From Trichosphaerium sp. ATCC 40318 (Eukaryota > Protista > Tubulinea), in contig JALMLS010000232.1 of assembly GCA_038496445.1 (NCBI GenBank), positions 1-64,000 of the forward strand: 64,000 bases of DNA, written 5' to 3'. The position numbers and the translations under genes were made by a program. Positions 304 through 62,943 of this stretch are shown piece by piece. The stretch's first letter is position 1, and every line of letters begins with the position of its first letter. The notes beneath the pieces are model-generated. The model saw only the letters and a program-made list of their open reading frames with translations, ran no database searches and was not told where the DNA came from.

Positions 304-1914
304 GTGAAAAGAGAAATATTCAGGCAAGGACATGATGCACCTTTAGCAGGACACTCAGGATTCGAAAAAACGTACCACAGGATAAAACAAAGATTTTACT
401 GGCCAGGAATGTTTACAGAAACGAAGGAATGGTGTGAGTCATGCCCATCATGCCAAAGAACTAAAACACCGAGATTAAGAAAAGCAGGATTAATGGGAGA
501 AAATTTTAATGTTGGAATACCTTTTGGACTAGTCACTATGGATATCGTTGGACCACTCAACAGGACACCTAGAGGAAACACTTACCTGTTAGTGATAAAT
601 GACAACTTCACTAAATGAGTAGAAGCTTTTGCTATGCCAGATCAGGAGGCTTTGACCATTGCCAAACTATTTGTGGACCAATGGTGTTTCAGATACGGAA
701 TTCCTAAGAAAGTGTTAACAGATCAGGGAGCTAACTTTACTGGAGAAATTATGAAGCAAGTCTATGATCTACTACACATAGACAAGCGACAAACATCAGC
801 ATACCATGCTCAAACCGATGGACAGACAGAGAGATTCAATCATACCTTAATAGAAATGATAAGACATTTTGTAAATGAAGATCAGGATAACTGGGATGTA
901 TGGATCAACCCTTCTCTTTTCGCGTACCGTACAGCTGTTCATTCTACTACCAAGTATGAACCCTACAGGCTATTATTCGGAACAAGACCTAGGTTACCAT
1001 TAGATGAACTGGTAGGACAAGAAAACATTTTAGAAAATAAATATAATATGACGGACTGGGCTGAAACAATTGCACATAGACTAAGAGCTGTACATGAATT
1101 AGCTAAGAAGAATATAATGGCACAGAAAAGGAAACAAGCTAAATATTATAATGAAAAAAGAAGAGAGATAGATTACGAACTGGGACAAAAAGTTTGGTTA
1201 TACGTACCTTATGTCAGAGAAGGAGAAAAGAAGAAATTGACTCAGAAATGGAAAGGACCTTACGAGATATTACAAAGGATTGGAAGTGTTAACTACCGGC
1301 TGGACATACCTAAAGGAAGCAAATTAAACCCTGTAGTTCATGTGGAGAGGATGAAACCTTTCATTGATTCATACCTAAGGCCTACTGAAGATATTGATGT
1401 GGACCTAAGAAATATTTATACAGAGACGGCAGAAAGAGGACTTTCAGAATTAGAATCAAGTGAAGATGGAAGTGGAGAATATATACCTGGACCTGTGATG
1501 GATGGAACCAAGTCTATGCGAGATGCTAGAACAATAGCTAATAAGATAAGGGAAGAAAGTAACAAACCACAAAGAATGGAAATCGATGGAGAAGAAGAAA
1601 ATAATACAAACCTGCGAAGAAGTAAAAGAGGAAATAAAACCACGAGAACGTCAAGGCTAAAAGAACTGATCCAAAGTACCTACAAGGTAATGGAGAAGTT
1701 AGGATTGGACAAATCAAAGGAGGCGCTAAAAGATTTATTGGGAATAGGATCAAGATTTATTAGATCAGGCACCAGGAGTAAGGATTTAGAAAATGAGATT
1801 TCGTACCAGGCAGGATGCGGTCTTCTACAGTTGAAAGAATGGGTTGGAGAAATGCTGGATAACTTCGATAATGAATTTAAAGAAGAACAACTACTGGCTA
1901 TAAGCGACTGGTAA
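304..1914 (+). pseudogene. Gypsy integrase interrupted by an in-frame TGA at 616-618
   Basis: ORFs 304-618 and 634-1914 are in the same frame. The join reads DNFTK*VEAFAM where these integrases have FTKWVEA. Further stops lie upstream near 170-180. Confidence 0.85.
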
Positions 1915-3467: not shown

Positions 3468-4928
3468 ATGGAAGAACCAAAGCCCGTAGCACCGTTTTTT
3501 GAAGGCGTTCCAATAGAAATTATTGTTGTAGTGTTTACGTACTGTAAAGACTATTTACATACTGCGTCTCGCTGTTGTAGGCTATTCTCGCAAATAATAG
3601 ACACTCACATGCGTCACTTGCTAAAACATAACAAAATAGTCGTCAAATCGCGTAAACGACTTAAAAAACTATATAAAACCGCACCCCACCTTATAAAACG
3701 GGTTCACATGGAAATCAAGTACGAACTAAGCCCTACAGATGACTTAAACAGTATTCTTTCTGGGGCACTTTCTCTCAGCTTTAAACACTTTCAAGTTACT
3801 TCAAGCGTTGGCTTCTTGGAAGGTGTTAAAAGTCTTGACTTTGAAAAAACTGATATTACTGATGACCATCTTAAACAGCTCAGTAAAGGAAAAGGAGGAG
3901 TGTATAAGATTGGTTTAGGCGGATGTAGAAGTATTTCAGATGTCGGCGTAAGCGAACTGTCAGGCGTTCATACAATATGTCTTAGTAGAACAAATGTAAC
4001 AGATGAGGGTATAAAGGCATTAGCAGGTGTTCACTCAATTGACTTGGATTATACTCGAGTTACAGATGAAGGTGTTATGGCGCTAGAAGGTGTTCATAAA
4101 ATATGTCTTTTTAGTACGGAGACAGGAGATGAATGTGCCAAAGCATTGGCAGGAGTTCATACAATATGGTGTTCGAAGAATTTCACTGATAAAGGAATAA
4201 AAGAACTAGCTGGTGTTCATACTATTGTACCAATGAGTAAATCTGTAACAGATGAAGGAATCAAACATCTTGCTGGTGTTCATGCTATTGATCTAAGATA
4301 TACAAGTGTTACTAGTGAAGGTATAAAATCATTAGCAGGAGTTCGTACCATTCGATTGTCTAAACATAATATTACTGATGGAATTGTTACGGGTTACATC
4401 CATGCTATTGATCTATCTAATACAGTAGTATCAGATTTTTATATCAAGCAGCTAAAAGGTGTTCACACGATTTTCTTAACAAGTTGCTTACAGATCACTG
4501 ATGAGGGTATAAAGACGCTTGCAGGTGTTCATACAATTGATCTTTCAGATACACTGGTAACTGATGAAGGTATTAAGGCATTGGCGGGCGTTTGTATGAT
4601 TAATATATCCAACACTGAAGTTACTGATGAAGGTGTTAAGGCACTTAAAGGTTTTGTTAAGGCTATTTGTTTACATGGTACACATATAACAGAACGAGGT
4701 ATTAGATCATTAGGAAGTTCTGTTAATGTATTTAATGCGCCTGATATAAAAGAAAAGATGAGGAGACTTGTTAGAATAGGACAATTGACAGCAACACGAA
4801 GACAACCATCTGCTAAATTTTGGATAAGACATACATCTTTTATACTAAAGTATAAGCGTATTTTACAGCTAGCATTTCCAATGGATTTGAAATGTAGTAT
4901 GCGGATTACACATACTGATGAACAGTGA
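3468..4928 (+). CDS. Intronless F-box-like + LRR protein (about 22-aa LAGVHTIxLSxTxVTDEGIKA repeats)
   Basis: N-terminal FFEGVPIEIIVVVF..SRCCRLF F-box-like segment followed by a long tandem LRR array. Confidence 0.85.
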   Translation: MEEPKPVAPFFEGVPIEIIVVVFTYCKDYLHTASRCCRLFSQIIDTHMRHLLKHNKIVVKSRKRLKKLYKTAPHLIKRVHMEIKYELSPTDDLNSILSGALSLSFKHFQVTSSVGFLEGVKSLDFEKTDITDDHLKQLSKGKGGVYKIGLGGCRSISDVGVSELSGVHTICLSRTNVTDEGIKALAGVHSIDLDYTRVTDEGVMALEGVHKICLFSTETGDECAKALAGVHTIWCSKNFTDKGIKELAGVHTIVPMSKSVTDEGIKHLAGVHAIDLRYTSVTSEGIKSLAGVRTIRLSKHNITDGIVTGYIHAIDLSNTVVSDFYIKQLKGVHTIFLTSCLQITDEGIKTLAGVHTIDLSDTLVTDEGIKALAGVCMINISNTEVTDEGVKALKGFVKAICLHGTHITERGIRSLGSSVNVFNAPDIKEKMRRLVRIGQLTATRRQPSAKFWIRHTSFILKYKRILQLAFPMDLKCSMRITHTDEQ

Positions 4929-16261: not shown

Positions 16262-19042
16262 TTATTTATGTATAGTCATTGTTCCAGCAGACCCTTTGAA
16301 TGACCTCTTACGACTATACGGGTTTACGGTGTCATGACAACAAGGTACAAGCCACAAAATCAAAACACCAACAACCACCTACAATATGTCACTCATTTTA
16401 CCTCGTTGCTTCCCTTACCAGAATGATTACACCTACTATACTACCAACAACGATAGGCCACCATCTTCTACTTTCGCATGTATTTCCAATTAGAATCACG
16501 TGCAACCTACACGTTTAATGAGACAAACATATCAAAACTAAGCGGTTTTTTTAAGCAAACCTTTGTCCATCGTATTCTTGAGATGCTTCTGAACACTCAT
16601 CAGCGCCTACTATTTCCAAACTTCCTTCAAGGCAAGAAGACTCAATAACTAGAATCCTAGTGTCTTCCACCACATTTACAGTAGATACATCTACTGTAAA
16701 ATTGCCTAGGGATACACATCCTAAAATAAAAAAATCACGTGTTTTTCTTTGACTAGTCTTGCTTTACCTCCAACTGATATGGTTGTGTTCCCATCTAGAA
16801 TTAAAGTAACTGACCCATAATTTATGAAGTCTCCAGCTATGGTTATGCTTTCATCGATGAGTAGTGTATCATTAACAGTAATATTTATGTTTGCATAGCA
16901 GTTTCGTTCGGCTACGATACAGCTATTTGTTGAAGGTTCTGTTGGACTTGCTGGCTCTGTTGGCATCGCTGGCTCTGTTGGCATTACTGGCTCCCCTGGA
17001 TTACTTGGCGCCATTGTACAGTTACCTATTGACTTGTTAACCTTTGGGCGCTTAATAGTATGTACCAGAGATAGAGTTTAGCTCTGGTGTTACTTTATTA
17101 ACAGCAAAATCACACTCATTTAGAGAAAGTATCACATAGTTATCAAACCCGACGGGATCTAGTTTACGTAAAAATCAACTTTTCAGAACTCACAGCAACA
17201 TACTGGGGCAACACATCGTATCTTCACACGGCGTCACGTCCGATAAAGTAGTTCCACATGATATATTTACAATACTCGTTGCTGTAATGAAGTTAATTTC
17301 ATACTTTTTTTGGCTCAAACATAGCCTTAATGAGACTTACCATTAGAAGTTACAAATCTTACGGTTATGCCATCTGTGTGACCAACAGAACATCCAATAT
17401 CGTTTCTTGGTGATGACCCGGTAGGTACTAGAAGATGCGTTAACAGGAGAAAGAACAAGTCGTTGTTGAAACATATTGCATGCTTTTGTAAAAAATGCTG
17501 CTTCTACGAAAAAGTTAGATGGATTTTTGATACAGTTCTTACGTCAATGTTAAGCTACCACTGGCCATGAATATAGATTCCCTGGCATTAATTAGTGCTA
17601 AACATATATAATAGCTGTACGTTGTAGAGCATGTACTACCAAGAAAGGCTGAGGATTCTATAGTGTATTGAGTTTCGCTGTAGATTATGCATCCTTTAAA
17701 CGGGTTAGTACTAGTTATTACATTTTATCTCAGTGCCTTCTCCTTCTCCAGATACTGTGTTATCAACAAATGCAGTATTAGATATTGTTACTTCATTGGT
17801 TCGATTACTGCTACGTATCACGCCAGTTTTGTAAGCACCTAAAGAAAAAAAAAAGATAAATAAAAAAAAGTACACAAAAGGTTGTGTAGTGTACACTGTG
17901 TTCCTGTTTCCATAAAGTTATTTTGAAATAAGCTACCTGTCATTGCGAACTACGAAATTGAGTTATTAAAACGGCTTTTTCTGAAAAAGTTTGATGTTAT
18001 TTACCTTTGTAAGACCGCTCGTAGAAATAATACCACCTTAAAAAAAACTGTTAATTTTTTTTCAATGTGCACTGACCAAGCAGCCCAACTATAAAACTTA
18101 TTTTTGTATTTTGGCGTTCACCAAAGCTTGGCTCATTTTTATCAAATATTGATGTCTAGTTTATTAGCACACTTTGAAAGTGAGCAAAGTTTGCCGTCAT
18201 CTGAAAAAAAAAAGCTTACCTTCGGCATTGCAGTCGGACATTGCTGCTCGTATTTCAACTCTGTTATCTTTGAATGTACAATTAACAAGATCAAGATTAC
18301 CTTCAGCTGCTGCTCTTAATACGTAACCGAAATTATTAACAGCAGTGATTCTTGCAGATACAAATTCGGTGTTACTAATCTCGCTGTTTCTATTTTAGAC
18401 AATAAAAAAGTTAGCAGTTAGGCTCTTAAACTTTTTGTCGTGCGCCATACGAATGAAGCAAGCTAAGAATTGTCGTTTCGGTATTGATGCCATCGAATTT
18501 ACAATTACTTTATATTTGGTTAGTTATTGCAATCGTAATATGAACCGTACTCTATTGTCAACTGCCCGATCTTCAAAAATTCAAGAGGACAACTGAAAAG
18601 AATATTTACAGCCATAAACGATTTTATATCATCGCTATCAATACGAACACGTTGTGATGGATTACATGTTACATGCGCTTTCTGATTGTATAGCACTTGT
18701 GATTGAGCATCGCCTGGAGTTTGGTTTTCAAAATTTTTTTTACTGTGGAGATTATTGGGGCTGCGTACCACTTATAATAGTCTTGTCTGTATTTAACCTA
18801 ACGCTATCTATAGTGTATGGACCAATACAAGGCGTCAAATATATATTAGTAGCGTTTAAAGATAGATAGCAAGTTAAATTAGTTTGACACGTGTGCTGAA
18901 GCGACGCAGTAACTATGGTGCCATTATTAAACAAATAACGGTAAGGTAAACCCTATATTGGTAGCGTACCATTAATACAGTCTACTCCATTGATTACACA
19001 AACTAACAAAAAGATAGCGCACGTCCAAGTGTAGTAACGCAT
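16262..19042 (-). CDS. Type I membrane surface protein (beta-helix-like ectodomain, PTEP linker, C-terminal TM), many exons
   Basis: Signal peptide MRYYTWTCAIFLLVCVINGVDC, Asn/Thr/Gly-rich beta-strand exons, PTEPA repeats, TM WWPIVVGSIVGVIILVVVGVLILWLV and a short basic tail. Confidence 0.72.
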
Positions 19043-19528
19043 GTTTTCGTGACAGTTTTTTTTTTTTGTTTTGGCAGTCAAATCTTCCGCTACTAGCGTT
19101 CATATAATTTACTCCTACAAGATGTCTGTATCTACAAAAGAAGCGCGTGTGTGCACCAGTAAAACAATTGTTCAATTTATAACTGCAAAGCCTGCTTGGT
19201 GTTTTTCTTATTCCCTGCCTGCAATAGCTGATACTCCTTACCTTTTTAAATACATGCAAACGGATAACAAATATCTTCCGGACAAAAAAGTCTTTTACTT
19301 GTTCCCATTTATGGGCGAAGTAATCTTTACCTATTACCTACCGTGTAAGCTGTGTTTGAATGTAATTAACTTTTCTGTCACGTGAGTTTTATGATTGGTG
19401 GCGGATTGATTGTCTTATGGATAACTCACTAATACCATCATTGCTCATCTAAGACTGCATTTTCTGAAAATACAACAAAGAGATTGTGCGGCTTTTTTTT
19501 GTTTAATTTAATAGTGTTACAATCAGGT

Positions 19529-22500
19529 TTATTGCTTACGTAAAGCTGATACGATAGTTCTAGCAGTAGGTCTCTTAGATGGGTCCATACGCCAACACAT
19601 TTTAAGAAGCTGAATGTGCTTGATACTTAGGTTTAAAGGAGGCAGCTTATTGTGTTTTCCTCCAAGTACTTGACCTATTATAGACTTTATAGAGGCATTA
19701 TCCTTCCATGGTTTCTCGCGCATGAGTATTTCCCAAAGCACAACACCATAACTAATACATGTGATTAACAGATGAGTAATGAAACAGCGCCATTATCAAT
19801 GCTGTTGCGCCGTTTTTGCTGCGACCGAAAAAGTTAAAAAAAAAAAGGATGTGTTGTACCTGTAAATATCGGTTTGTACTGTTAGTTGTTCGTTGTTTAT
19901 TTGCTCTGGTGATGCCCATAATATTGATTTTCTTGGGTCTGCTGTTATTATAGTTGATTCTCTTGTACGTGCTAATCCAAGATCACCTATCTTAGCAATG
20001 CCACCACGTCCAATCTGAAAGAAAAAGTGAGTTTTAAGTATAATTTTTTTTTGTTCAGTGTCATGTTTGGTAAAAAACTATCAATGAGGCGTAGTCATAT
20101 TAATGGTGTTGTATATTTTTTGTGTTAGAAAATTCAATTAATTGGTTTTGGCAGCAAATTAGAAGCTATTACTAAAGCAACAAAAAAAAGTTTTTTTTTT
20201 GACATTTGATTCATTCGGCGTACCAAAACGTTCATTGATTTGATATCCTTATGTACAGTATTATTTTCGTGAAGGTAACATAAACCTGCTGCAATATCAA
20301 GAGCAATAGTACTTCCTTGAATATCCCAATGTACTATAGGGTCATCATTATCAATAAGATGATAAAGATCACCCATCTCCAAAAATTCTGTTATAAAAAA
20401 AAGAGAATCTTTTTGTGCACAACCACCCATGTATAATACAATATTAGGATGACGTAATTTCATTAACATTTCCATCTCGTCTTTGAATTCTTGAATGAGT
20501 CTAAAAAAGATAGTTAGCGAGGATCTGGAAGAAGCACAAACAAAATCCAAAAAAAAATGCAAAAAGGCAGAAAGCAGAAAAAAAAAAGTGTTTGTTGTTC
20601 GTACTTTTGGTTACGTCCTTTTGAGCTTATAATTTTCTTCAATGCAACACGTGTACCTAACGTAATATTAAAGAAAGTTCTAAGTTTATACAGGGCGTAT
20701 TGCAGGATAATGACGAATTAAAAGACATTATAAACAAAAATTGTTACCTTTGTATTCAGTCAAGAAAACTTGACCAAAACCTCCTTGACCAAGCATGATA
20801 GGATCACCATCTTCGTCATTAACAAAAGTAATAGATTCCTCCTATAATTTCATCAGTATACAATTAGTGACCGATCTAGGAGCGTCAAAAAAACTACGTA
20901 CATCAATCTCCCAAAATCGTTGCATTTGATTATATAACCTCGTTTTTGCAATATTGTCTTCGTCCTGTAGTATGAGCGTTGGTATGTGCATGCTATTACC
21001 ACCTATAAATTTATTAGAATCGTATTGATAAAATACAAATCATGTCACGTGCCAATACCACCTTGTGCAATCTCTCCAGCTCCATATTTTATAGAGCGAA
21101 CGTATTCCTTTGCTCTTGTTGAATCTTCTTCATACAGTGTTCCAGGTGTATTCATAACGTCTACCAATAAGTTCCGTTTATTAATACGAACAACGTTCCA
21201 AGCATGTCCACAGTTATTGCGCTTAGAGAAACCCTTAAGAGAACATGTTATGAAGATTGTCTCATTTGAATAAAAATAGAAAGACGCACTCTTATCAAGC
21301 GACATGGCATGCCTAGTCTATCGGCGATGTACTTGTAAAGTGTGGCGCGATGTCTACATACACCATGCTTTATTTCTCCAATCAGAACAATATTCTTTCT
21401 ACGCTGACGGCGAGCAGCATTCAATTCAAAGCGACATTGTCTAAGTAAGGATTTTAGTATTTATATTTTTTGTTTTGTTTTTTATGCTCTTACGCTGGTA
21501 GATTATCAGGTCTTAGACCATAAAATGAGTCTACTAATTCTGCTAATTTAATAGCTTTGCTTTCAGGATCTTCAGTAAACAGGTCTGAAGCAGCATAACC
21601 TAAAAACGTCAGACTTTTCAATGAAATACAAAACAAAGAGAATTCTTCTGCCAAAAGAAGGTACCTAAAAATTGTACTAGATTTGAATCTAGCATTCTAT
21701 CAACTACTATAATTTCTCTTGTTGTTAAATCATCAAAAGCAAGACGTTTCAAATCAGCATTTCGACCTACAATGTCATGAGACAACTTTTTTAATGAGTA
21801 GAAAACCCAAACAAACCTGGGTCAACGAAGCCGTCTTCAATGATTTCATCGTAGTTGAGCGCATTTTTCTCTGCGTATATTGTTGAACTTGGGGCATCTG
21901 ATGTTATGTCCTTTTCTGTTATAGATAGAATAGATGACATAGGGCTGTTAGGTGTTGCTGGGGAGAGTGTAGACATTGACAACTTTGATCGAAGAAAAGC
22001 TTGTTCTGATTCTGGTGTTTTAAGGTAGTGCCTTTCTTCCATTTGTGAAGGCTAGCAAGTCGTTACTTAGATTATAAATACAGACTGCAAAAGAGTTGCT
22101 AGTTGTTTAACGTACAACTGGAGATTCGTGTAGAACGCTGTGTGAACCATTGGTTGGTGTTTTTGGTGACTCTGGTAGTTGTTTTTGTTTATCTTTTTTG
22201 GGTGTTGCATTTGTCATGATTTTATTTACTTTCCTCGGTAGTATCACTGTTGGTGGAGTACCATTAGGTACTGCATTTTCATCATTTACGGGTGTATGTG
22301 GAGAGTCAACATTAGGTGCACCAAGGACTACAGTTGGCGCTTTTAAGAAGTTAATTCGCATATACTACCTTGGTAATTTAGGTCTTACGTGTCGTTGGAA
22401 CGGTCCCACCCTTCAATAATTTTTTGATGTCATCGTGTCCGTATTTTTCAGCCAAATCGTAGCTAGTTAAATTGCCATACTTACACAAAATAAGCGAACG

Positions 22501-23334
22501 GCTTTGTGTCGACAAAAAGTGTTGATTTTTCTTGATGATATCAGTTTTTTACGTACTCTAGTCTTTAAAGACACATCAGCGCCTTTATCCAGAAGTAATT
22601 TCACACATCTGATATTGTCCTCAACAACGGCATAGTGAAGGGGTGTCATCTAGGAATGAATGTAAGTTTGACATTTGTAAAAAAATATCCATAAAAAAAC
22701 CAAAAAAAGAAGTTGAAGTTGAAAATAGTTTGTGGCTATCCAAAAAATCCAATAAAAATAATCGTACCAACTGCGATATTTGTAAGTATTTATCCACGGA
22801 AAATAAATGAACATCAAATAGTAGAACCACAAAAAAAAAAAAAAACTGTTTCTGATCATAAAATTTAGTTTAGCGTACACTCTATAAAAATGAGTTAGTT
22901 ATGGTAGAAGATGGCGTCAAAAAGGGTTTTAAGATTTTTTTGAAAATGGCGCTAGGATTTAAATGCGTACACTTAGAGCTGTCGACTTTTATAACATAAA
23001 CGAGTTAGTAAAACCATACATAACGCTACGAAGTGACGTACAGCCTAAATTGAGTTAGTTTAATTTTTTTTAGATTTAACTCTGTACCATCTAACAAAAA
23101 ATGAGTCTGTGGTAGTTCGTGTGTGCCAGGATGTATTAGTAAACGCTAAAATAAAAAAAGAACGCACATACTACGGTTATATCAGCTAAAAAGATGCTAA
23201 TAATAATATAGTACGTGGTATTCGTTTACTACGCTACTGTAGGAATCATCTTGTAACAGTCTTCGTAATTTCATTACATTGCCAACCTGTACTGTTTTAA
23301 CAAGTGACCTTACTTTCTCCTGTGTCGGTAACAT
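19529..23334 (-). CDS. Ankyrin + EDR1/CTR1-domain + TKL (Raf-like) protein kinase
   Basis: Ankyrin TPLHYAVVEDNIRCVKLLLDKGADVS. EDR1 domain GVCRHRATLYKYIADRLGMPCRLIRG..HAWNVV. Kinase motifs GQGGFGQV, VALK, HKDIKSMN, DLG, WASPE. Exon 1 is 23334-23215. Confidence 0.88.
22768..23170 (-). other. Microexon cluster: TAT (23170-23168), ATG (23090-23088), GCT (23044-23042), 15-nt TCGACAGCTCTAAGT (22985-22971), AGT (22881-22879), TTG (22770-22768)
   Basis: Each is flanked by an AG acceptor and a GTAC or GTGCGT donor, with CTAAC/CTGAT/CTTAC-type branch points upstream. All are phase 0. Confidence 0.75.
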
Positions 23335-23438
23335 CTTTTGATCAGGCTTTAAATACGGTTTTTGAAAAGCGCGGCAAGAAACACAAGTTGACTTAATTCA
23401 TAAAATTGTAGGAAATGTAATTCGCTCCGACGTTCAAT

Positions 23439-23671
23439 GGATTTGACCTGAAATAACGCTATTCTATTTTAACGTTTGCCTACTTTTTAAAAGGCCACTC
23501 CTGATTTGTAGCACGTGTGTGACTTTCTGCTCTTATGGCCATGTTAAGTACTGCATGAGGATACACTAATGAGTAGCTTGCAGAGTTGTAAAAGGCTACC
23601 TATGTTCACAAACCGTCCCGAAAAATCAGGCTTAGCGCTAACACAAAATAGCGTTACTTCAGGTCAAATCC
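23439..23671. mobile_element. MITE, about 233 bp, PIF/Harbinger (Tourist)-like
   Basis: TIRs GGATTTGACCTGAAATAACGCTATT ... AATAGCGTTACTTCAGGTCAAATCC and a 3-bp TSD AAT on both sides. Second copy at 38578. Confidence 0.88.
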
Positions 23672-24851: not shown

Positions 24852-25368
24852 ACTGTTGAAATACACGTGATATAGGAAAAATTTCGGAAAAAACGAAGCA
24901 CACATGGTTGGAACTAGAACACTTAACTGCAACTTTTTATCCTCTTTCTCCGTGTTCAGTCATACCACTAGCAACAAATAGGTGTTGAAGATCTATTAAA
25001 GTATGTTCTATAAGATGCTGGAGTGCAGGTTCTCTGTAAACGGTTAAATACAAATCGATAATTTTGTTTGTATGTATCAACAAATTAACCAATTCAACAT
25101 TCATCACTCAAAGTTTTTCTTTTTTCGGTTTGAGAACACGTGATAAGATTCTACATGTTCGCGTATTTGGTTCTAGAAAGGTTGTACATTGCCATTGTGA
25201 AGAAAAACTTGTACTTTTGTTTATTTGGACGCGGTTTCCTACAACAGCAAATTTTTGTTTTTTTGTTTTTTTGATACCTTTGTTATCACGTGATATTTTA
25301 AGTTATCGTATTTCTACAAGATTTATTTGTCTTAGTCGCAGCCTTGTACCCAAAACAGGGACGACATT

Positions 25369-26317
25369 ATGCTTTCTTCATCAAAGCGAAAGTAAAATCG
25401 ACAGTACCACCAGTGCGACTTTCTTGCAGCTACCTACAGAGATATTAGCCCATATTTTGCGTCAAACGACTAAATCGCGATTTTCTGCTTGTCAAACATG
25501 TCATTTCCTCGCTTCTATCGTTCATGACATTACTGGATACCATGCTGTTACTATAAAAAAGTTAGCTCACGCAAAGTCAGTTTTAAAACATTCTGGGATT
25601 ATGAAATACACTGCCATCACCCTTAGTGGACATGATTTTGATGACAATATTATCAAACTTTTTGCTGGAGTTCACACGATTTACCTTCGCAGCGCTTCCG
25701 TAACAGATGAAGGTGTCAAAGCACTTGCTGGAGTTCATACGATCTGCCTTAGTTACAGTTCAGTAACTGATGAAGGTATTAAAGCACTTTGTGGAGTTAA
25801 CACGATTTCCCTTGATAGCACTTCAGTAACGGATGAAGGTGTCAAAGCACTTGCTGGAGTTCACAAAATCTACCTTGGTAACACTTCAGTAACTGATGAA
25901 GGTATTAAAGCACTAGCAGGAGTTCACACAATCTACCTTGATAGCACTTCAGTAACTGATGAAAGTATTAAAGAACTTTGTGGAGTTCACACGATTTCCC
26001 TTTGCAGCACTTCAGTAACGGATGAAGGTGTCAAAGCACTTGCTGGAGTTCATACGATCTGCCTTAGTTACAATTCAGTAACTGATGAAGGTGTTAAAGC
26101 GCTTGCTGGAGTTCATACGATCTACCTTAGTTACACTTTAGTAACAGATGAAGGTGTCAAAGCACTCGCCGGAGTTCATACTATCAGCATCCGTAACACT
26201 TGTGTGACTGATGAAGGCTTAACAGCGCTTGCAGGGGCATCCTATATTGTTGCCGAGAATAGTGGTGTAACGAGGGAGGGAGCTAAACTTTTAAAGGGAA
26301 CTAGAGTGACTATATAA
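25369..26317 (+). CDS. F-box + LRR protein (66-nt repeats); start apparently frameshifted, possible pseudogene
   Basis: FLQLPTEILAHIL F-box, then about nine LAGVHTIxLxxxSVTDEGVKA repeats. The nearest upstream ATG (25369, MLSSSKRK*) is out of frame with the F-box. Confidence 0.78.
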
Positions 26318-30982: not shown

Positions 30983-31744
30983 ATGGAAGCAACATTTGAA
31001 AGTATGCCGACTGAAGTCACTGTAATTATACTCAAGTGTCTAAGTGATCGAAATAGATGTAATTCAGCACAAGTGAATACAATCTTTAGAGATATTATAC
31101 ATCATCACGTGGGCTACAAACAAGTAACAATAAATTCTCTATCCTCCGCTCAAGCATTAGCAAAACATCCCCTTCTTCTTCAGAATGCACTTGTTTATTG
31201 TGATAGCCCCACAGACAATATCTTGGAGGCACTAGAAGGCATAAAGTATTTTAAAGGAGGGTTTACTAAAGTGCCTTACTCGAATCTGTCTACATCAACC
31301 TCAATATATTATCTTCTACCAAGAAGGGAGGGTTTTCACGGCCAAGTTACAGACAAAGGAGTATCATATCTTGCTGGAGCGCACACAATCAACTTATGTG
31401 GGTGTGTAAACATCACAGATGAAGGCATTAAACACCTTAAAGGAGCTCACACTATTAATCTTGGCAATTGTCATGATGTAACCGATGAAGGCATAGCTAT
31501 GTTGGCAGGTGTACATGATATCAACCTTTCATTCTGTTCTAAAATAACTGATAAAGGGATTAAAGCTCTTAAAGGCGCACATACAATAAATCTAATGAAT
31601 TGTAGAAACATAACAGCTGAAGGTGTTATTGCATTACGTGGTGCAGATACTATTGATTTAAGGCATTGTACCTCAATTACTCGTAGTGTCTGTAAAGAGC
31701 TAAGAAAGAGCAATGCAATAAAAAATATTGTAAGCTACTATTAA
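30983..31744 (+). CDS. F-box + cysteine-containing LRR protein, intronless
   Basis: FESMPTEVTVIILKCL F-box and LxGAHTINLxxCxNITDEGI repeats. Confidence 0.85.
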   Translation: MEATFESMPTEVTVIILKCLSDRNRCNSAQVNTIFRDIIHHHVGYKQVTINSLSSAQALAKHPLLLQNALVYCDSPTDNILEALEGIKYFKGGFTKVPYSNLSTSTSIYYLLPRREGFHGQVTDKGVSYLAGAHTINLCGCVNITDEGIKHLKGAHTINLGNCHDVTDEGIAMLAGVHDINLSFCSKITDKGIKALKGAHTINLMNCRNITAEGVIALRGADTIDLRHCTSITRSVCKELRKSNAIKNIVSYY

Positions 31745-42895: not shown

Positions 42896-44541
42896 AAACG
42901 TTCAAAAAAAGTCAATATAGATTTCTTGAGAGTCAAAGTCAAGTCAGAGACAAGCACTGTCAACCAGCTAGAGGTCAACTTTTGTGTCTCGTAGTGCCTT
43001 GCTTCTTATTGAACGCATTTTAATAGGACCAGTAGTAATTATGGTACGTAAAACAAAATTAGTTTAGCTGCATTGAAATTAACAAACTTACAAGCGGAAT
43101 AGCTTGTTCAAACAAAATAAAATTTCGGTTTAGGCTTTCGCGACCAGAAATTAACGCGATTTTAATTAAACGTTAAAACAACGTTTCAAAAGCCACTTTC
43201 AACGAGTTTGCACTACTTTTGGCGAGCACGTGTTCTATTTCTCAGAAATCACGCTAACGAAGGCCTTTTTGTGTTTCAATTTTACAAGTTTGCATTTTTA
43301 TGGTTTACATTTGAAACTCTCCTGCAGTACCCTTCAGTATTAGTCTTCTAACATTTCAATAGTCCGCAGCCAACAGGAAAAAATCAAGTAAATTGGGTAC
43401 TGTGAGTTTGTTGGATATTCCACGTGAGCTTCAGATGTACATTTGTACTTTCAATATTGAAGCATTCACAAAATTCCATACTCTATCAAAGAGAGCTGCA
43501 ATTAATACTCATTATGATGAATCATTACAAAAGAAAGGAATGTGGATACGATGGTATAAAAGTGGAAAGGTTCAGTTACATCACCATGTAGTGAATGGCC
43601 CTGGTAAAGAATGGCATACAAACGGACAATTGAAGACCTCATGTACGATCATCAATGGTAAGCAACATGGTGAACACAAAGAATGGTATGTAAATGGTCA
43701 ACTAAAAATACAGTGCATATGTGTCAGTGGTAAAATCCATGGTGAATATAGAGGATGGTATGAAAAAGGACAGCTTAAGTTTCAGGCAATGTTTATTGAT
43801 GATAAACGCCATGGTGAATGTAGAGAATGGTATGAAAATGGACAACTTAAGTTTCAGACAATGTTTATTGATGATAAATGCCATGGCGAAAGTAGAGGAT
43901 GGTATGAAAATGGACAACTTAAGTTTCAGACAATGTTTATTGATGATAAACGCCATGGCGAAAGTAGACGATGGTATGAAGATGGTCAACTAAAGTATCA
44001 GGTAATGTGTATTCATGGTAAACAACATGGTGAACATAAAGAATGGCATGAAAATGGTCAACTAAAAATACAGCACATGTGGATTGATGGTAAACTCCAC
44101 GGCGAAAGTAGACGATGGTATGAAGATGGTCAACTAAAGAATCAGGTAATGCGTATTCATGGTAAACAACATGGTGAACATAGAGAGTGGTACAGGAATG
44201 GACAACTTGAAGAACTTTCGTTGTGGACTGATGATAAACTAAATGGCAAAGCTAAGGAATGGTATGAGAATGGACAACAGATGGAACATTCCATGTGGGT
44301 AGATGATAAACGGCATGGTAAAACTAGAAAATGGTATGAGAATGGACAACAAAAGTCACAGTCCATGTGGGTAGATGGTAAACGGCATGGTATAACTACA
44401 GAATGGTATGAGAACGGACAACAAAAGTCACAGTCCATGTGGATAGATTGTGAACAACAAATTAAAAGTGTTTGACTCTGGTAGTGCTATTGCTCCTTCT
44501 TATATTTGATTCTTTGTAGATATCGCCATGTGTAAAATAAA
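42896..44541 (+). repeat. Inverted segmental duplication, copy A (partner 58896-60416)
   Basis: About 500 nt of upstream sequence, the CDS and the 3' UTR up to AATAAA match the reverse complement of 58896-60416. Confidence 0.92.
43402..44475 (+). CDS. F-box-like + MORN-variant repeat protein, copy A (ATG changed to GTG)
   Basis: LLDIPRELQMYI followed by 24-aa GKxHGExxEWYENGQLK repeats. Intronless. Confidence 0.82.
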   Translation: MSLLDIPRELQMYICTFNIEAFTKFHTLSKRAAINTHYDESLQKKGMWIRWYKSGKVQLHHHVVNGPGKEWHTNGQLKTSCTIINGKQHGEHKEWYVNGQLKIQCICVSGKIHGEYRGWYEKGQLKFQAMFIDDKRHGECREWYENGQLKFQTMFIDDKCHGESRGWYENGQLKFQTMFIDDKRHGESRRWYEDGQLKYQVMCIHGKQHGEHKEWHENGQLKIQHMWIDGKLHGESRRWYEDGQLKNQVMRIHGKQHGEHREWYRNGQLEELSLWTDDKLNGKAKEWYENGQQMEHSMWVDDKRHGKTRKWYENGQQKSQSMWVDGKRHGITTEWYENGQQKSQSMWIDCEQQIKSV

Positions 44542-54769: not shown

Positions 54770-56732
54770 TCAAGTAGGCGTTTGTACGTAGTGGCCCATG
54801 TATGATGCAAATGCCCTCAGCGTCGTTCGTCGTTCAATTTTTAACCAATCCAGCCGACGGGGAATAAACTCTATATCAGTGGAACCTAAACCTAGCTTCT
54901 GTGCGAACAAATCTTCTACAGTCATATTGACTGGTTTACGGTAGTGTCGGACCTCGCGGTTTGGTGACATGTAGGATATGGTGAGTTTGTCGGGGTGGAG
55001 ACGTGAGAAACGCATAAGGACATAGGTTTTGCCATTATTTTGTGTCGATATTTCCGATAGAATATGTTTTGAATGAATTGCATTGACCAAACCAACGAAA
55101 CCGTTGCACAGTGCGTATTTCTCGAGATTGCACGCGATTTTGCTGTAGGGTCCCCAGTGACAACACAGAAGGTGAAACTTATAAGGTGTTACCTAAAGAT
55201 CGTTAGTAAACTACACAGTTACAAAAAAAAAACTGTGAAGAGTCCACAAAACCTATGTTCCAGGGAGCAAACCAGTTTCGAAGGAAAAAAATAACGGAAA
55301 ATACTTAACGGCAAAGTTTTGCACGTTAGAGTGAAAAAGCCAAAAAACTTGGGCAAAAGAGGTAAAAAGATAAAGAGTTGAAAGTTAGGAAAGATGAGGG
55401 AAAGCGCGTAGATGTAAAAAAGCCGTATTAAAAACAACGACAAAAGGATAAATAAGGGGTCAGGTTGCGCAGCAAGATCGTTTAGCTAGCTTCGCATCAC
55501 ATTGTAGAAAAGCATTAAATGTGTAGTCTACGTATATTCACCGAATTAAAAACGCATTAAACGCGCTAGCAATACGATATTAAAGATAGAGAAGACGTAC
55601 CAAGTCGTCCCGTGGGAAGTTCACAAAAAACTTGAGGCTCGCTATGAGGTCTTCATAAGAAGCATCAATTTCTCTAGAATGGCTAGAAACAAGCGGTTGA
55701 ATGACTTGTGAGCAGAATTGATCAAATTTGACAAAGTAACGTCCTTGCCCAAATAATTCAGTCCACAAAAGCCTTGCTTGCTCATCAGCTATCAGCGTCG
55801 ATGGCTCGTGAAGTGTGTGATCGTCAGCCTCAATGAACATTCGCTTGAGTTGATCGTAGTAGCGCCTGAGCGTCAACTCGTAGATATCAAAGTTTGGCGA
55901 AATATCCATTTCATCACGCGCAATCTGCTCCAAAGTCGTTGTGGTGTCTTCTATATTACCTGAGAGAACTTGGACAAGTCGTTGGAAACACTGAGTAGTT
56001 TTAACCGGGTACTTGTTCCAAAGACTTTCAGGAGTAGATTTAGCCACTGACAAGAGCAACATCTCTGTGGCTTCAAGAGTCGCTTTTAAATATCCGATTC
56101 TAGCCTTTTGATTCGCCAGTGCCTTTGGACCTTTATCTGGTAATCTTGTGCTATACGTTTCGCGTCCTTCTTGACTGTTACGCATAGTCATCTCAATCTT
56201 ATCTTCCAGCGATCCGGTAATTTCCTTCGCTTTCCTTGCTCGGTACTGACAAAGACGTGCATCCATTTGAGCATGTTTACGGTAAAAAATATGTGCACTG
56301 ACACACTCTCTAAAGTTTAAAGAAACCCCACGGCATACAGCAAGGTCTCGTATATCTAAAAGAGAAAAAACACAAAGCTTAACATCATAGTAAAGTTCGT
56401 CGAAAAGATCAAATCTCCTCCACTCGTGACACTCTAAGAATAGGTTGTGAGTCATTAAGAAAAGTTTTGTTGCGTAACATTCGGAGATTCCGTTAACCTT
56501 CTGGTTCCGAAGGAAACAGGTTCAACGAATAAGCATTTAAAAGTAGCGTACGTGGTAGCGGTGATGGTATGACGCGTATGGCATCTGTTTTATTTAATAT
56601 AAAGCCACTTATGCGTTTACTACTAAAATCTTGTGTTTGGCGCTCAAGACTGTGTTGGCTTCTTGTTTGTCGTCGTAGTTGCTTTTCGTCGCTGTATGAG
56701 GTATCCTCTGTTGTATAACTTTCAATAGCCAT
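54770..56732 (-). CDS. F-box + Cbl-TKB-like (helical, EF-like, SH2-like) protein; start uncertain
   Basis: F-box FDELYYDVKLCVFSLLDIRDLAVCRGVS, then ARLLWTELFG..VKFDQF, VTPYKFHLLCCHWGP, GFVGLV..YVLMRFSRLHPDKLTISY. The upstream exon (56732-56497) splices in frame. Confidence 0.72.
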
Positions 56733-58895: not shown

Positions 58896-60416
58896 CTTTA
58901 TTTTGCACATACAGAGTAGTACAAGAAATCAAGTTGGCAAACATGAGTTAAAAAAGAGAAATCAACGCTACTGGAGTCAAACTCTTTTAGTTTGTTGATC
59001 ACCATCTATCCACATGCGCTGTATTTTTAGTTGACCATTTTCATGCCATTCTTTATGTTCACCATGTTGTTTAGCATCGACCCATATGGACTGTGACTTT
59101 TGTTGTCCGTTCTCATACCATTCTGTAGTTTTACCATGCCGTTTATCATCTACCCACATGGAATGTTCCCTCTGTTGTCCATTCTCATACCATTCCTTAG
59201 TTTTGCCATTTAGTTTACCATCAGTCCACAACGAAAGTTCTTCAAGTTGTCCATTCTTGTACCATTCTCTATGTTCACCATGTTGTTTACCATGAATACA
59301 CATTACCTGATACTTTAGTTGACCATCTTCATACCATCGTCTACTTTCGCCATGGCGTTTATCATCAATAAACATTGTCTGAAACTTAAGTTGTCCATTT
59401 TCATACCATTCTCTACATTCACCATGGCGTTTATCATCAATAAACATTAGCTGAAGCTTAAGCTGTCCTTTTTCATACCATCCTCTACATTCACCATGGA
59501 TTTTACCACTGACCCACATGCATTGTGTCTGAAGTTGACCACTTGCATACCATTGTTTGTGTTCACCATGTTGCTTACCATTGATGATCGTATATGAGGT
59601 CTTCAATTGTCCGTTTGTATGCCATTCTTTACCAGGGCCATTCACTACATGGTGATGTAACTGAACCTTTCCACTTTTATACCATCGTATCCACATTCCT
59701 TTCTTTTGTAATGATTCATCATAATGAGTATTAATTGCAGCTCTCTTTGATAGAGTATGGAATTTTGTGAATGCTTCAATATTAAAAGTACAAATGTACA
59801 TCTGAAGCTCACGTGGAATATCCAATAAATTCATAGTACCCAATTTACTGGATTTTTTCCTCTTGGCTGTTAACTATTGAAATGTTAGAAGACTAATACT
59901 GAAAGGGTACTTGCAGGAGTTGATTTTTTTGACCCCTCGGAACACAAATAAAAATGTTACAAGACACAACATAAACAGTTACTGCACAAGGCTCCAAATG
60001 ATAAAAGGCTATCTTTGCTTGCTGTTTTGTGACAAAGGCGCCAAAACACGTGATTTCTGAGAAATAGAACACATGCGAAAACACGTCGCTGAATTTCGCG
60101 ACAAGGTGCCTGAAAGTGGGTTTTGAAACGTTGTTTTAACGTTTAATTAAAATCGCGGTATTTTCAGGTCAGCGAAAGCTTAAAACAAATTCTATTTTGT
60201 TTGAACAAGCTACTCCACTTGTAAGTTTGTTAATTTCAATGCAGCTAAACTAATTTTGTTTTACGTACCATAATTACTACTGGTCCTATTAGAATGCGTT
60301 CAATAAGAAGCAAGGCACTACGAGACACGAAAGTTGACCTCTAGCTGGTTGGCAGTGGTTGTCTCCGACTTGACTTTGACTCTCAAGAAACCTGTATTGT
60401 CTTTTTTTGAACGTTT
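58896..60416 (-). repeat. Inverted segmental duplication, copy B
   Basis: Reverse complement of 42896-44541. It begins at the Pol kappa stop codon. Confidence 0.92.
58977..59834 (-). CDS. F-box-like + MORN-variant repeat protein, copy B (intact ATG)
   Basis: MNLLDIPRELQMYI plus MORN-variant repeats. 72 aa shorter than copy A. Confidence 0.85.
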   Translation of the reverse strand: MNLLDIPRELQMYICTFNIEAFTKFHTLSKRAAINTHYDESLQKKGMWIRWYKSGKVQLHHHVVNGPGKEWHTNGQLKTSYTIINGKQHGEHKQWYASGQLQTQCMWVSGKIHGECRGWYEKGQLKLQLMFIDDKRHGECREWYENGQLKFQTMFIDDKRHGESRRWYEDGQLKYQVMCIHGKQHGEHREWYKNGQLEELSLWTDGKLNGKTKEWYENGQQREHSMWVDDKRHGKTTEWYENGQQKSQSIWVDAKQHGEHKEWHENGQLKIQRMWIDGDQQTKRV

Positions 60417-62943
60417 ATTCTGATATCAATGATTCATCATTGAAGCATTCAAGAGGGTTTTTAATTCTTGTACCTTCCTACCTGTTAACTTAGACTGCAA
60501 CTATCTTTATTCACAATTATTTACAACACAGCACCAACTTATTAATCCGAAAACAAAACTTGCGGAGGCTCAATCTTTCTTTTTACAAAAAAAGGATTCA
60601 ATCGTTCCCTTCTTATCCAGCTTACGCTTCTTAGGTGATACCTGTCCGTGCTGTGATTTACGCTAGATATAATAATAAGAATGGTGTTTTGTAAAATGAT
60701 CACGTGCCTTCAACGGTAACAGAGTAGTTCCAGACTTGTCAGATTTTGAAAAATAATCAGTTACCTTGACTTGTTTTCCAGGAGACTGTCGTATATCTAC
60801 ACTATGTACATCAATGAGCTTCGTCATTCGTATACCAAGACATCTAATATATATATCCTTATCAAGCTCTGTAATCTTTGTTGAAACAACATCTAACAGC
60901 TGTATTTCGTCATTTGTTGGAACAATAAAACTCTTTGATCTTCGAATTTTCTTAAAATTAGCTGTTTGCATTGTGACTTCTACCAACCGTCCCTAAACTC
61001 CTTGTCAAAAAATCAAACATGTATTTCAGTGTTAGTACCAGTTTCCCTTTGTTTACCATACTTTTCGATATATCAGCACAAATCTTCCTTGCTTGATCGA
61101 GTAAAAAAGATTTACGACAATCAGGGCTTGAAAAGGTTCTTTGTTTTCCAATGCTTTTACGTTCTTTGTAGTTGTGTCTTGTGCTTCCTAAACCAAGACA
61201 AGAACCCATGAATGATTCAAAACGCTTTTGTTTTGTAAATTTATAGAGATAATAGCGCTAAAAACAAGTTGTAAGCCCTTCAACAACAGCAGAAAGTATA
61301 AAAAGAAAAGAAAAATCCCTTGGTATTGTTGAAAAAAACATGTCGCGTTTTCCTACCTTGCCCCATAAATCGTTAAGTGTAAATACATTTAGGGTTTTCT
61401 CAAGTTGCTCATTTGTTACAGGACCTAGAATCGCGCCTTAGAAAGTCAAAGTCTTTTGTACAATCCAAAAAAGTTGAAAGATGAAAAAATCCGAAGTATG
61501 CTTACCTATACCAGGTACTTTTGCTAGTTTAAGGTTACGAACAAAGTTCTTGATAGAAACAACGTTATTGGATAAACAAAATAATCCATCAGGTTTCCCA
61601 TGTTCACAGCAAACTTTTGCCAAAAACTTGTTAACAGCTGTGCCTAGAATTAAAGCCTTTAGTCGCCTGTAGCTCTGCAAGAAGTTTTGTTAGACAGTGT
61701 TTCGTACCAACACTACAAGGAAGGTTTAGTTCTTCCTTAATATGCCTCTTTATATTGGTAGCAGCTCGCTTCGCACAAAGACCTTTTGAGTTCATGTACT
61801 AGTAAGAAAAAAATGAGAATTTTATCAAATGTTTGCTACAAGCAACACGTGCGTCTGTAATATCAACAGCAGCTTCATCTATAGATCTCATTTGTAGTTG
61901 TGGATCGTAGTTGCGTAATATATTACTAGTATAGATGTCAAAGGAAGTTAAAAGTAGAGTTTGACGAACCCAATCTGTACAGAAATCGCTTTGTATTTGT
62001 TGAAGCTACTTCCAACAAAGATAAGTTCTTTTCCAGCTTTTCTTACGAGTTCAGCACCAATAAATCCTATTATTAATGAGGTCATTAAAAGCGACAGGGT
62101 TTACATACCAGGCATAGCAGAGCGAACGCCATACTTTCTTGCCTCATAGTTTGCTGTTGATATCATTTTTCTACCGCCAACAGCAACAGGATGGTTCTAG
62201 TTTAACCAACAGTTAGTATGATAAACTACCAATTGTTTTTGATTGGCAATTGTACCTTAAGTTCAGGGTTATCACGTTCTTCTACAGAAGCAAAAAATGC
62301 ATCCATATCAAGATGAAGCCATCTTTAACAAGAAAAAGTTAAAAGTTCAATATTTCTTGCTTTTTTTTTCCTAGTACGTTTTGGACACATCACGTGATTC
62401 TTCTAATTTCTTGACCATCTCATCAACCACACGTTTATCATTTGATGTCACTCTCACATGAACAAGCCATTTTTTCAATGCTTCAATCTTTTCTTGGTTC
62501 TTTTTGTTCGCTTCTTGCTTAAACTCATAATACTTTGATCCCCTTGTCTGCTTCAAAATAGACTCATTAACAGAAGCGCTATCAACCTTTTCAAGCCCAC
62601 ACTTGTTGGTATTAAGCTTAAGAGAACGTGGCAGTGCTTGAGAACTAACTGGAGGCAAGATGGCCGATGACTGAGCTCTTGAAGACTGATCAATCACGGC
62701 GTCATTGGATTCATCTTCTGGTTTGTTTTCAATATGCTGCGAGTCAGCCAAGTCAAACTCCTCGTCATCATCGTCCAGATCTCCAAAATCCTCAAATACA
62801 TTCTGTGGTACAGGTGGCTCAACTGTCAGGTCAATAATAGTGTTTGAGGACTCGTGAGAAGTTAAGTCTATTTGGGTTGGTTTGATAAGCGTTTTCTTTG
62901 GTTCTGGTGAATTTAAAGGCATGTGAGGATGGTTTAGGCGCAT
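60415..62943 (-). CDS. POLK: DNA polymerase kappa (Y family, DinB)
   Basis: N-clasp GLEKVD..RGSKYY, HLDMDAFFASVE, STANYEARKYGVRSAMPG, SIDEA, KVPGIG, RKSIG, and a C-terminal NLS with PIP-like KGTIESFF. Confidence 0.93.

Follow-up and report, generated by a model that had tools for sequence, protein, structure and literature searches.

A 565 nt interval between the first two exons of an ankyrin-kinase gene in Trichosphaerium sp. ATCC 40318 may well be a tandem array of seven short spliceosomal introns, whose single-codon spacers would stay in the mRNA. Judging from sequence features, we give this interpretation about an even chance. The gene lies on the minus strand of a 64,000 nt stretch of DNA (assembly GCA_038496445.1, contig JALMLS010000232.1, positions 1-64,000), which is referred to here as the window. 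The interval carries splice signals in a non-random arrangement that preserves the reading frame, and it resides in a gene whose normal splicing habits can be read from RNA contigs.

Layout of the interval and its gene

Exon 1 ends with ...GAATACCAC at 23215, immediately before GTACTA. Exon 2 begins with ATGACACCCC at 22649, and its translation opens MTPLHYAVVEDN. The 565 nt between them can be parsed from end to end as seven GT...AG units separated by six spacers (Table 1). An initial annotation of this DNA had proposed the same seven-intron parse, and its coordinates, donors and spacers all proved exact when the minus strand was read again. The annotation had also stated that every spacer is in phase 0, such that any subset keeps the frame. 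This holds as well: all six spacers are multiples of three nucleotides and none contains a stop codon. The length of the complete interval is 3n+1. Sub-intron 6 has a length divisible by 3, but its third in-frame codon is TAA. The predicted product comprises 734 aa if exons 1 and 2 are joined directly and 744 aa if all spacers are kept, and both frames are open.

Table 1. Parse of the 565 nt interval and of the gene that contains it. Coordinates are those of the window; donor scores are in bits.
Feature	Coordinates	Strand	Length and sequence	Donor score	Product or remark
Exon 1	23215..23334	-	ORF of ATG + 39 codons, ends at GTAC donor		MLPTQEKV...SVVNEYH; divergent N-terminal ankyrin cap
Sub-intron 1	23171..23214	-	44 nt, GTACTA...CTGAT...GTAG	3.0	branch-like CTGAT 12 nt from 3′ end
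Candidate microexon 1	23168..23170	-	3 nt, TAT		Y
Sub-intron 2	23091..23167	-	77 nt, GTGCGT...ACTCAT...TTAG	6.6	
Candidate microexon 2	23088..23090	-	3 nt, ATG		M
Sub-intron 3	23045..23087	-	43 nt, GTACAG...ACTAAC...TTAG	2.5	
Candidate microexon 3	23042..23044	-	3 nt, GCT		A
Sub-intron 4	22986..23041	-	56 nt, GTACGT...ACTAAC...AAAG	10.0	highest donor score in the gene
Candidate microexon 4	22971..22985	-	15 nt, TCGACAGCTCTAAGT		STALS
Sub-intron 5	22882..22970	-	89 nt, GTACGC...ACTAACTCAT...ATAG	7.8	
Candidate microexon 5	22879..22881	-	3 nt, AGT		S
Sub-intron 6	22771..22878	-	108 nt, GTACGC...ACTTAC...GCAG	7.1	
Candidate microexon 6	22768..22770	-	3 nt, TTG		L
Sub-intron 7	22650..22767	-	118 nt, GTACGA...ACTTAC...CTAG	8.3	
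Exon 2	22557..22649	-	MTPLHYAVVEDNIRCVKLLLDKGADVSLKTR		one full ankyrin repeat; Pfam Ank E = 1.5e-9
Rest of gene	19529..22556	-	13 exons + 13 introns		ankyrin repeat 3, linker, EDR1/CTR1 peptidase-like domain, TKL-type kinase domain

The assignment of this gene to the EDR1-type kinases with ankyrin repeats, also made in the initial annotation, is borne out by Pfam, which finds Ank, EDR1_CTR1_ARMC3 and kinase domains. Specifically, exon 2 is an ankyrin repeat that aligns with profile positions 3-32 of 33 of PF00023, the exon at 21290-21439 matches PF14381 (EDR1_CTR1_ARMC3_pept; E = 4.5e-13), and the exon at 20224-20499 matches PF07714 (PK_Tyr_Ser-Thr; E = 5e-19). The location of PF14381 N-terminal to a TKL-type kinase domain, an order backed by spliced RNA contigs, identifies an EDR1/CTR1-type (Raf-like) protein. 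The proposed link to plant defence and ethylene signalling is not transferable: the genome is marine, non-plant-like and rich in F-box/LRR and MORN genes.

A search of sequencing runs gave matches mainly in RNA-type runs of two organisms, which differ by ~1% in their exons, and in one marine metagenome. The RNA evidence used here consists of contigs of runs X1, X3, X8 and X11 placed on 19300-23600. A template-switch oligo at the loose end of one contig leads us to presume that run X1 is a SMART-type cDNA library. Eleven spliced joints downstream of the interval are confirmed directly by RNA, and a twelfth (22388-22340) is supported by a loose end that continues into exon 3. The intron between exons 2 and 3 (22556-22480) is taken from the gene model alone and lies in a stretch without RNA contigs; none of the contigs placed on 19300-23600 extends over 22468-23331. 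Furthermore, a representative-protein search with the 79 aa linker exon as query yielded 0 matches, JGI metagenome contigs contained neither a relative of this exon nor a spliced junction pattern with an insert of 0-30 nt, and word-based protein searches centred on exon 1 and exon 2 recovered no fragment of 33-115 aa.

When cut at canonical positions, the 13 introns of the rest of the gene measure 49, 50, 50, 53, 56, 60, 64, 65, 77, 91, 104, 108 and 209 nt, with a median of 64 nt. GTACGT serves as the donor in three of them and GTAAGA in two, and GTACGC, GTACGA, GTACAA, GTACCT, GTGCGT, GCACGT, GTAACA and GTTTGT are found once each. A GC-AG intron at 21003-21052 on the minus strand, which begins GCACGTG, is represented by spliced RNA contigs in X1 and X3. 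The gap between exons 1 and 2 had been described as much longer than the usual intron, and at 565 nt it is indeed 2.7 times the length of the longest verified one (209 nt). At the opposite extreme, a 42 nt intron at 62067-62108 is supported by homology, as it interrupts a DinB-like polymerase gene at the conserved junction ...SAMPG|FIG..., which brings units of 43-44 nt within reach of the spliceosome. Verified introns span 42-209 nt, mostly 50-110 nt; their donors are of the GTACG type, and 10-22 nt separate YAG from an upstream CTNAY branch motif. The organism appears to splice by intron definition.

Splice signals within the interval

The sequence YAG-NNN-GT[AG]CG is present at 6 sites in 128 kb (both strands of the window). 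Four of these are inside the 565 nt interval, for which the background rate predicts ~0.01, and the remaining two correspond to ordinary exon ends. Of the six internal donors of the interval, five follow a YAG at a distance of exactly 3 nt, and for the other one this distance is 15 nt. As motif matches, all six spacers have the splice-site flanks of a microexon, each being located between YAG and a GT[AG]C donor.

To score the donors, we used a matrix built from 14 verified donors, with the scores of the verified donors themselves obtained by leave-one-out. The seven donors of the chain have scores of 2.5-10.0 bits, compared with 0.5-9.1 bits for verified donors. The donor of sub-intron 1 is at the low end of this verified range. 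In relation to GTACAG of sub-intron 3, the donor GTACAA is RNA-verified elsewhere in the kinase gene. The interval contains six internal donor-like sites that score at least as high as the median verified donor, versus 0 in 1078 nt of verified intron interior. Two introns of the kinase gene that are spliced whole in RNA contigs served as controls: internal AG..GT pairs are present but weak in the 64 nt intron, and the 209 nt intron is free of internal donors.

A CTNAY motif whose branch A is 10-20 nt from the 3′ end occurs in five of the seven units, and in three of these it is a perfect ACTAAC, at a distance of 11-20 nt. Over the whole window this hexamer shows no enrichment, with 35 sites versus ~40 by a rough base-composition estimate. 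The pattern of the chain is non-random. It is also unique in the window, where looser scans gave only coding LRR repeats or null-level matches. Specifically, clusters of loose AG-NNN-GT sites at 25729-26123 (minus) and 4022-4340 (plus) were rejected as exon chains on being recognized as coding LRR repeats, and the two strict-scan candidates at 29848 and 29914 (plus), which lie opposite sequence that looks coding, agree with the ~2 expected under the null.

Possible retention of the spacers and competing interpretations

If the interval is an array of short introns, each unit, having complete signals at a normal size, would be recognized and removed on its own. The unit sizes (43-118 nt) match those of verified introns. 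Removal of adjacent units would probably be sequential, since 3′ and 5′ sites that are 3 nt apart cannot both be occupied at the same time. With the spacers retained in this manner, the tip of the first ankyrin hairpin would gain as many as ten residues (Y-M-A-STALS-S-L), inserted after His40 and before Met41. Both the use of the internal sites and the retention of the spacers are what we infer from the sequence. As to its likely origin, an ancestral phase-0 intron may have lengthened and then been subdivided, with the smallest in-frame footprints left behind; such footprints could be tolerable in a surface loop.

Several features argue against the array. The predicted insert YMASTALSSL is not loop-like, as it lacks G, P, D and N. 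Weak donors (GTACTA and GTACAG) open units 1 and 3, whose lengths exceed that of the shortest intron seen by just 1-2 nt. Also, 3 nt is the tightest packing of YAG and NNN|GT, which makes the multiple-of-3 argument weaker than (1/3)^6, such that it rests mainly on the 15 nt piece.

The architecture of the ankyrin repeat is a further consideration. The initial annotation located the break at the ankyrin hairpin, and this position is correct: the break lies between Ank profile positions 2 and 3, just before TPLH. Retained codons would consequently lengthen the first ankyrin finger. The annotation had additionally held that the loop needs about three added residues to reach its normal size. This part fails, because with a direct CAC|ATG join 14 residues lie between LL (profile positions 21-22 of the first repeat) and the T of TPLH, so that the canonical period of 33 residues is already reached exactly. 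The junction is likewise crossed without gaps in a local alignment to a tandem ankyrin consensus, although this alignment is no more than a lead. Even with no insert the protein looks complete and would appear not to need one, which is a point against the array.

The same spacing favors a single long intron, in which CAC is joined directly to ATGACA in the mature mRNA and nothing from the internal sites is retained. The internal sites could then be evolutionary relics or decoys that are never used; alternatively, they could act in nested splicing, as intermediates by which the intron is shortened before a final outer splice removes the spacers as well. We consider a single intron the main rival, less likely than the array but well possible. 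The insert that is unlike a loop and the weak donors 1 and 3 speak for it, exons of 3 nt are sterically awkward, and the splicing of the 209 nt intron as a whole in two runs indicates that longer introns are tolerated. Furthermore, sub-intron 2 contains a competing ACTAAT and CACAG acceptor, the use of which would generate a 19 nt, frame-breaking exon. However, a single intron provides no reason for six consensus donors to be located 3 or 15 nt past YAG with a branch motif, and verified introns avoid internal donors altogether, as noted above. It also reduces the in-frame state of all spacers to a coincidence.

A different proposal concerns the start of translation. Exon 2 opens exactly with ATG, and if this were the start codon, exon 1 and the chain would constitute a 5′ untranslated region with non-coding spacers. 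The 5′ end of the transcript is not defined by any contig of X1, X3, X8 or X11. Pfam finds no match to exon 1 or exon 3 alone, both of which are merely cap-like, and exon 1 exhibits no significant similarity to the ankyrin consensus (z = -0.8). In opposition to this proposal, exon 1 is an ATG-started ORF that remains in frame through the join, and without any gap its G..LL residues coincide with ankyrin positions 14 and 21-22. Moreover, its codon-usage score is positive in the proposed frame only (+0.13 per codon, versus -0.23 to -0.88 in the other five). Given this score, exon 1 was treated as coding and the 5′ UTR was kept as a rival, which we judge to be improbable.

The initial annotation had proposed that the spacers are cassette microexons whose varying combinations tune the ankyrin recognition loop residue by residue. 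The spacers are all symmetric and stop-free, any subset of them is in frame, the skipping of one spacer still leaves an intron of normal size (102-229 nt), and their location is the hairpin tip just before TPLH. Nevertheless, the window has a single chain of this type, nothing points to ligand contact by the loop, and signals of such strength predict constitutive rather than variable use. We find the cassette proposal very doubtful, and its combinatorial use of 2^6 isoforms and role in recognition are pure speculation. The combined scenario, wherein an overgrown intron was split into seven under a spliceosome adapted to very short introns and the footprints act as cassette exons that lengthen the first ankyrin finger stepwise, seems just as hard to credit.

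Lastly, that splice-like motifs simply fell together in AT-rich intron sequence is extremely improbable: GTAC by itself is common (320 per 64 kb) and loosely defined intron-like units are also frequent in shuffled sequence, but chance accounts neither for the four strict sites in the interval nor for the presence of YAG at exactly -6..-4 in five of six donors (p ~1e-7, a rough estimate from base composition).

Possible origins, known microexons and neighbouring features

A recent introner or tandem-duplication origin of the array is not supported by comparison of its units. The mean similarity among chain members in the 64 kb window (z = 0.43) versus that between chain and control introns (z = 0.29) led us to reject a transposon-derived family, an introner family or a tandem duplication. 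Similarity among the units includes nothing past the splice consensus and poly-A/T. The short strings that they have in common correspond to the branch and 3′ consensus (AACTAACTCA..T-run..AG) and to homopolymer runs, and the resemblance of sub-introns 3 and 5, and of 6 and 7, is attributable to consensus motifs and low-complexity runs.

We also considered whether the units host small RNAs. A search of 22650-23214 against Rfam (E <= 1) returned no match except a chance lncRNA, and the predicted fold of the interval is not significant (z = -0.39). The lack of an Rfam family and of a stable fold makes a hosted small-RNA cluster unlikely. A cluster of intron-hosted snoRNAs, with one C/D or H/ACA RNA per intron, was rejected when Rfam gave no snoRNA match. 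An 18 nt pair with 83% complementarity (22864-22881 and 23138-23155) connects the branch region of sub-intron 2 with candidate microexon 5 and the donor of sub-intron 6; considering the fold of the whole interval, this pairing is probably due to chance.

The chain resembles recursive or nested splicing, in which a long intron is removed stepwise through internal pairs of 3′ and 5′ sites. At ratchet points AG and GT adjoin, defining a zero-length exon that leaves no footprint. In contrast, each site pair of the chain is separated by 3 or 15 nt. Strict recursive splicing was rejected on this basis, as AG|GT abutment is not seen at any of the six internal sites. The upstream junctions of the chain regenerate no donor either, and with this spacing any use of the sites must leave codons behind.

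Microexons of 3 nt are established in animals, where examples include the diglycine/triglycine switch of cytohesin-1 and MAP4K5, and RPS24 has three adjacent microexons (PMC6314551, PMC8632122, PMC11162997). As in these cases, the chain exons of exactly 3 nt would each add one residue and are flanked by ordinary splice sites, and RPS24 offers a parallel for several microexons side by side. However, the animal microexons are single or at most three in number, are located in long introns, and depend on exon-definition machinery and regulators. The chain has five 3 nt and one 15 nt predicted exons within 565 nt, with introns of 43-118 nt, in a protist-like genome.

In plants, microexons of 1-15 nt include the 1 nt exons of APC11 and VPS55 and a pair of 5 nt and 12 nt in rice; they are constitutive and conserved, are sometimes found as two adjacent exons, and are routinely missed by annotators (PMC8831610). 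Plant microexons split conserved coding sequence, mostly occur singly and are not restricted to one phase, whereas all spacers of the chain are in phase 0 and the protein seems complete in their absence. Schistosome MEGs contain tandem symmetric microexons of 3-81 bp, the skipping of which keeps the frame and yields variants (bioRxiv 10.1101/2023.06.21.545858). These genes encode small secreted proteins, consist almost entirely of microexons and have introns of up to 5 kb, unlike the chain, which is confined to one loop of a large intracellular kinase and has very short introns. A gene of the schistosome MEG type was rejected, as microexons would account for no more than 30 of 2235 coding nt and the gene encodes an ankyrin-EDR1-kinase of 734-744 aa. 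In the literature we found no described run of several 3 nt exons separated by introns shorter than 120 nt. If real, the chain is an extreme form of known microexons and not a new category.

Should transcripts confirm the spacers, no denser array of minimal exons would be known, and the locus would establish that 3 nt exons can be strung together. It would then serve as a test case for how the spliceosome recognizes exons too small for any exonic signal, for the order in which adjacent introns are removed, and for the evolution of long introns under intron definition. It would also show that gene models in this genome can overlook codons which neither aligners nor gene predictors place. Were the direct join the sole product, the interval would instead offer six strong decoy pairs of splice sites, a natural collection that the cell ignores. 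The locus is of interest regardless of the ligand-recognition claim, which has no support at present.

Several other features were noted in the window. A short stretch at 23439-23478 is matched by two or three X1 cDNA contigs over these 40 nt only (90-95% identity), with unrelated sequence on both sides. It looks like an element common to other transcripts, located ~105-145 nt upstream of the kinase start codon. The 42 nt intron at 62067-62108, which is the shortest supported in the window, resides in a gene for a DinB/Pol kappa-like translesion polymerase (61500-62700, minus; ...DMDAFFASVEERDNPELK..., ...STANYEARKYGVRSAMPG|FIG...). ORFs with F-box and LRR_6 (RNI-type) domains are present at 25064-26314 (+) and 30983-31741 (+), along with an LRR_6-only ORF at 3468-4925 (+) and an F-box-only ORF at 55583-56455 (-); the LRR arrays are the source of the false AG-NNN-GT clusters in the scans. 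Two long ORFs at 43393-44472 (+) and 58980-59843 (-) are composed of MORN_2 repeats (Pfam E = 2e-49 and 2e-38, respectively). The ORF at 634-1911 (+) combines a Tf2-1-like SH3 domain with an integrase p58 C-terminal domain, which suggests a remnant of a Ty3/gypsy-type retroelement. Finally, a multi-exon gene at 16700-19100 (minus) encodes a P/T/E-rich repeat (PTEPAMPTEPASPTEP) followed by beta-helix/PMP-like repeats (...FVDNTVSGEGEGT..., ...FKDNRVE...).
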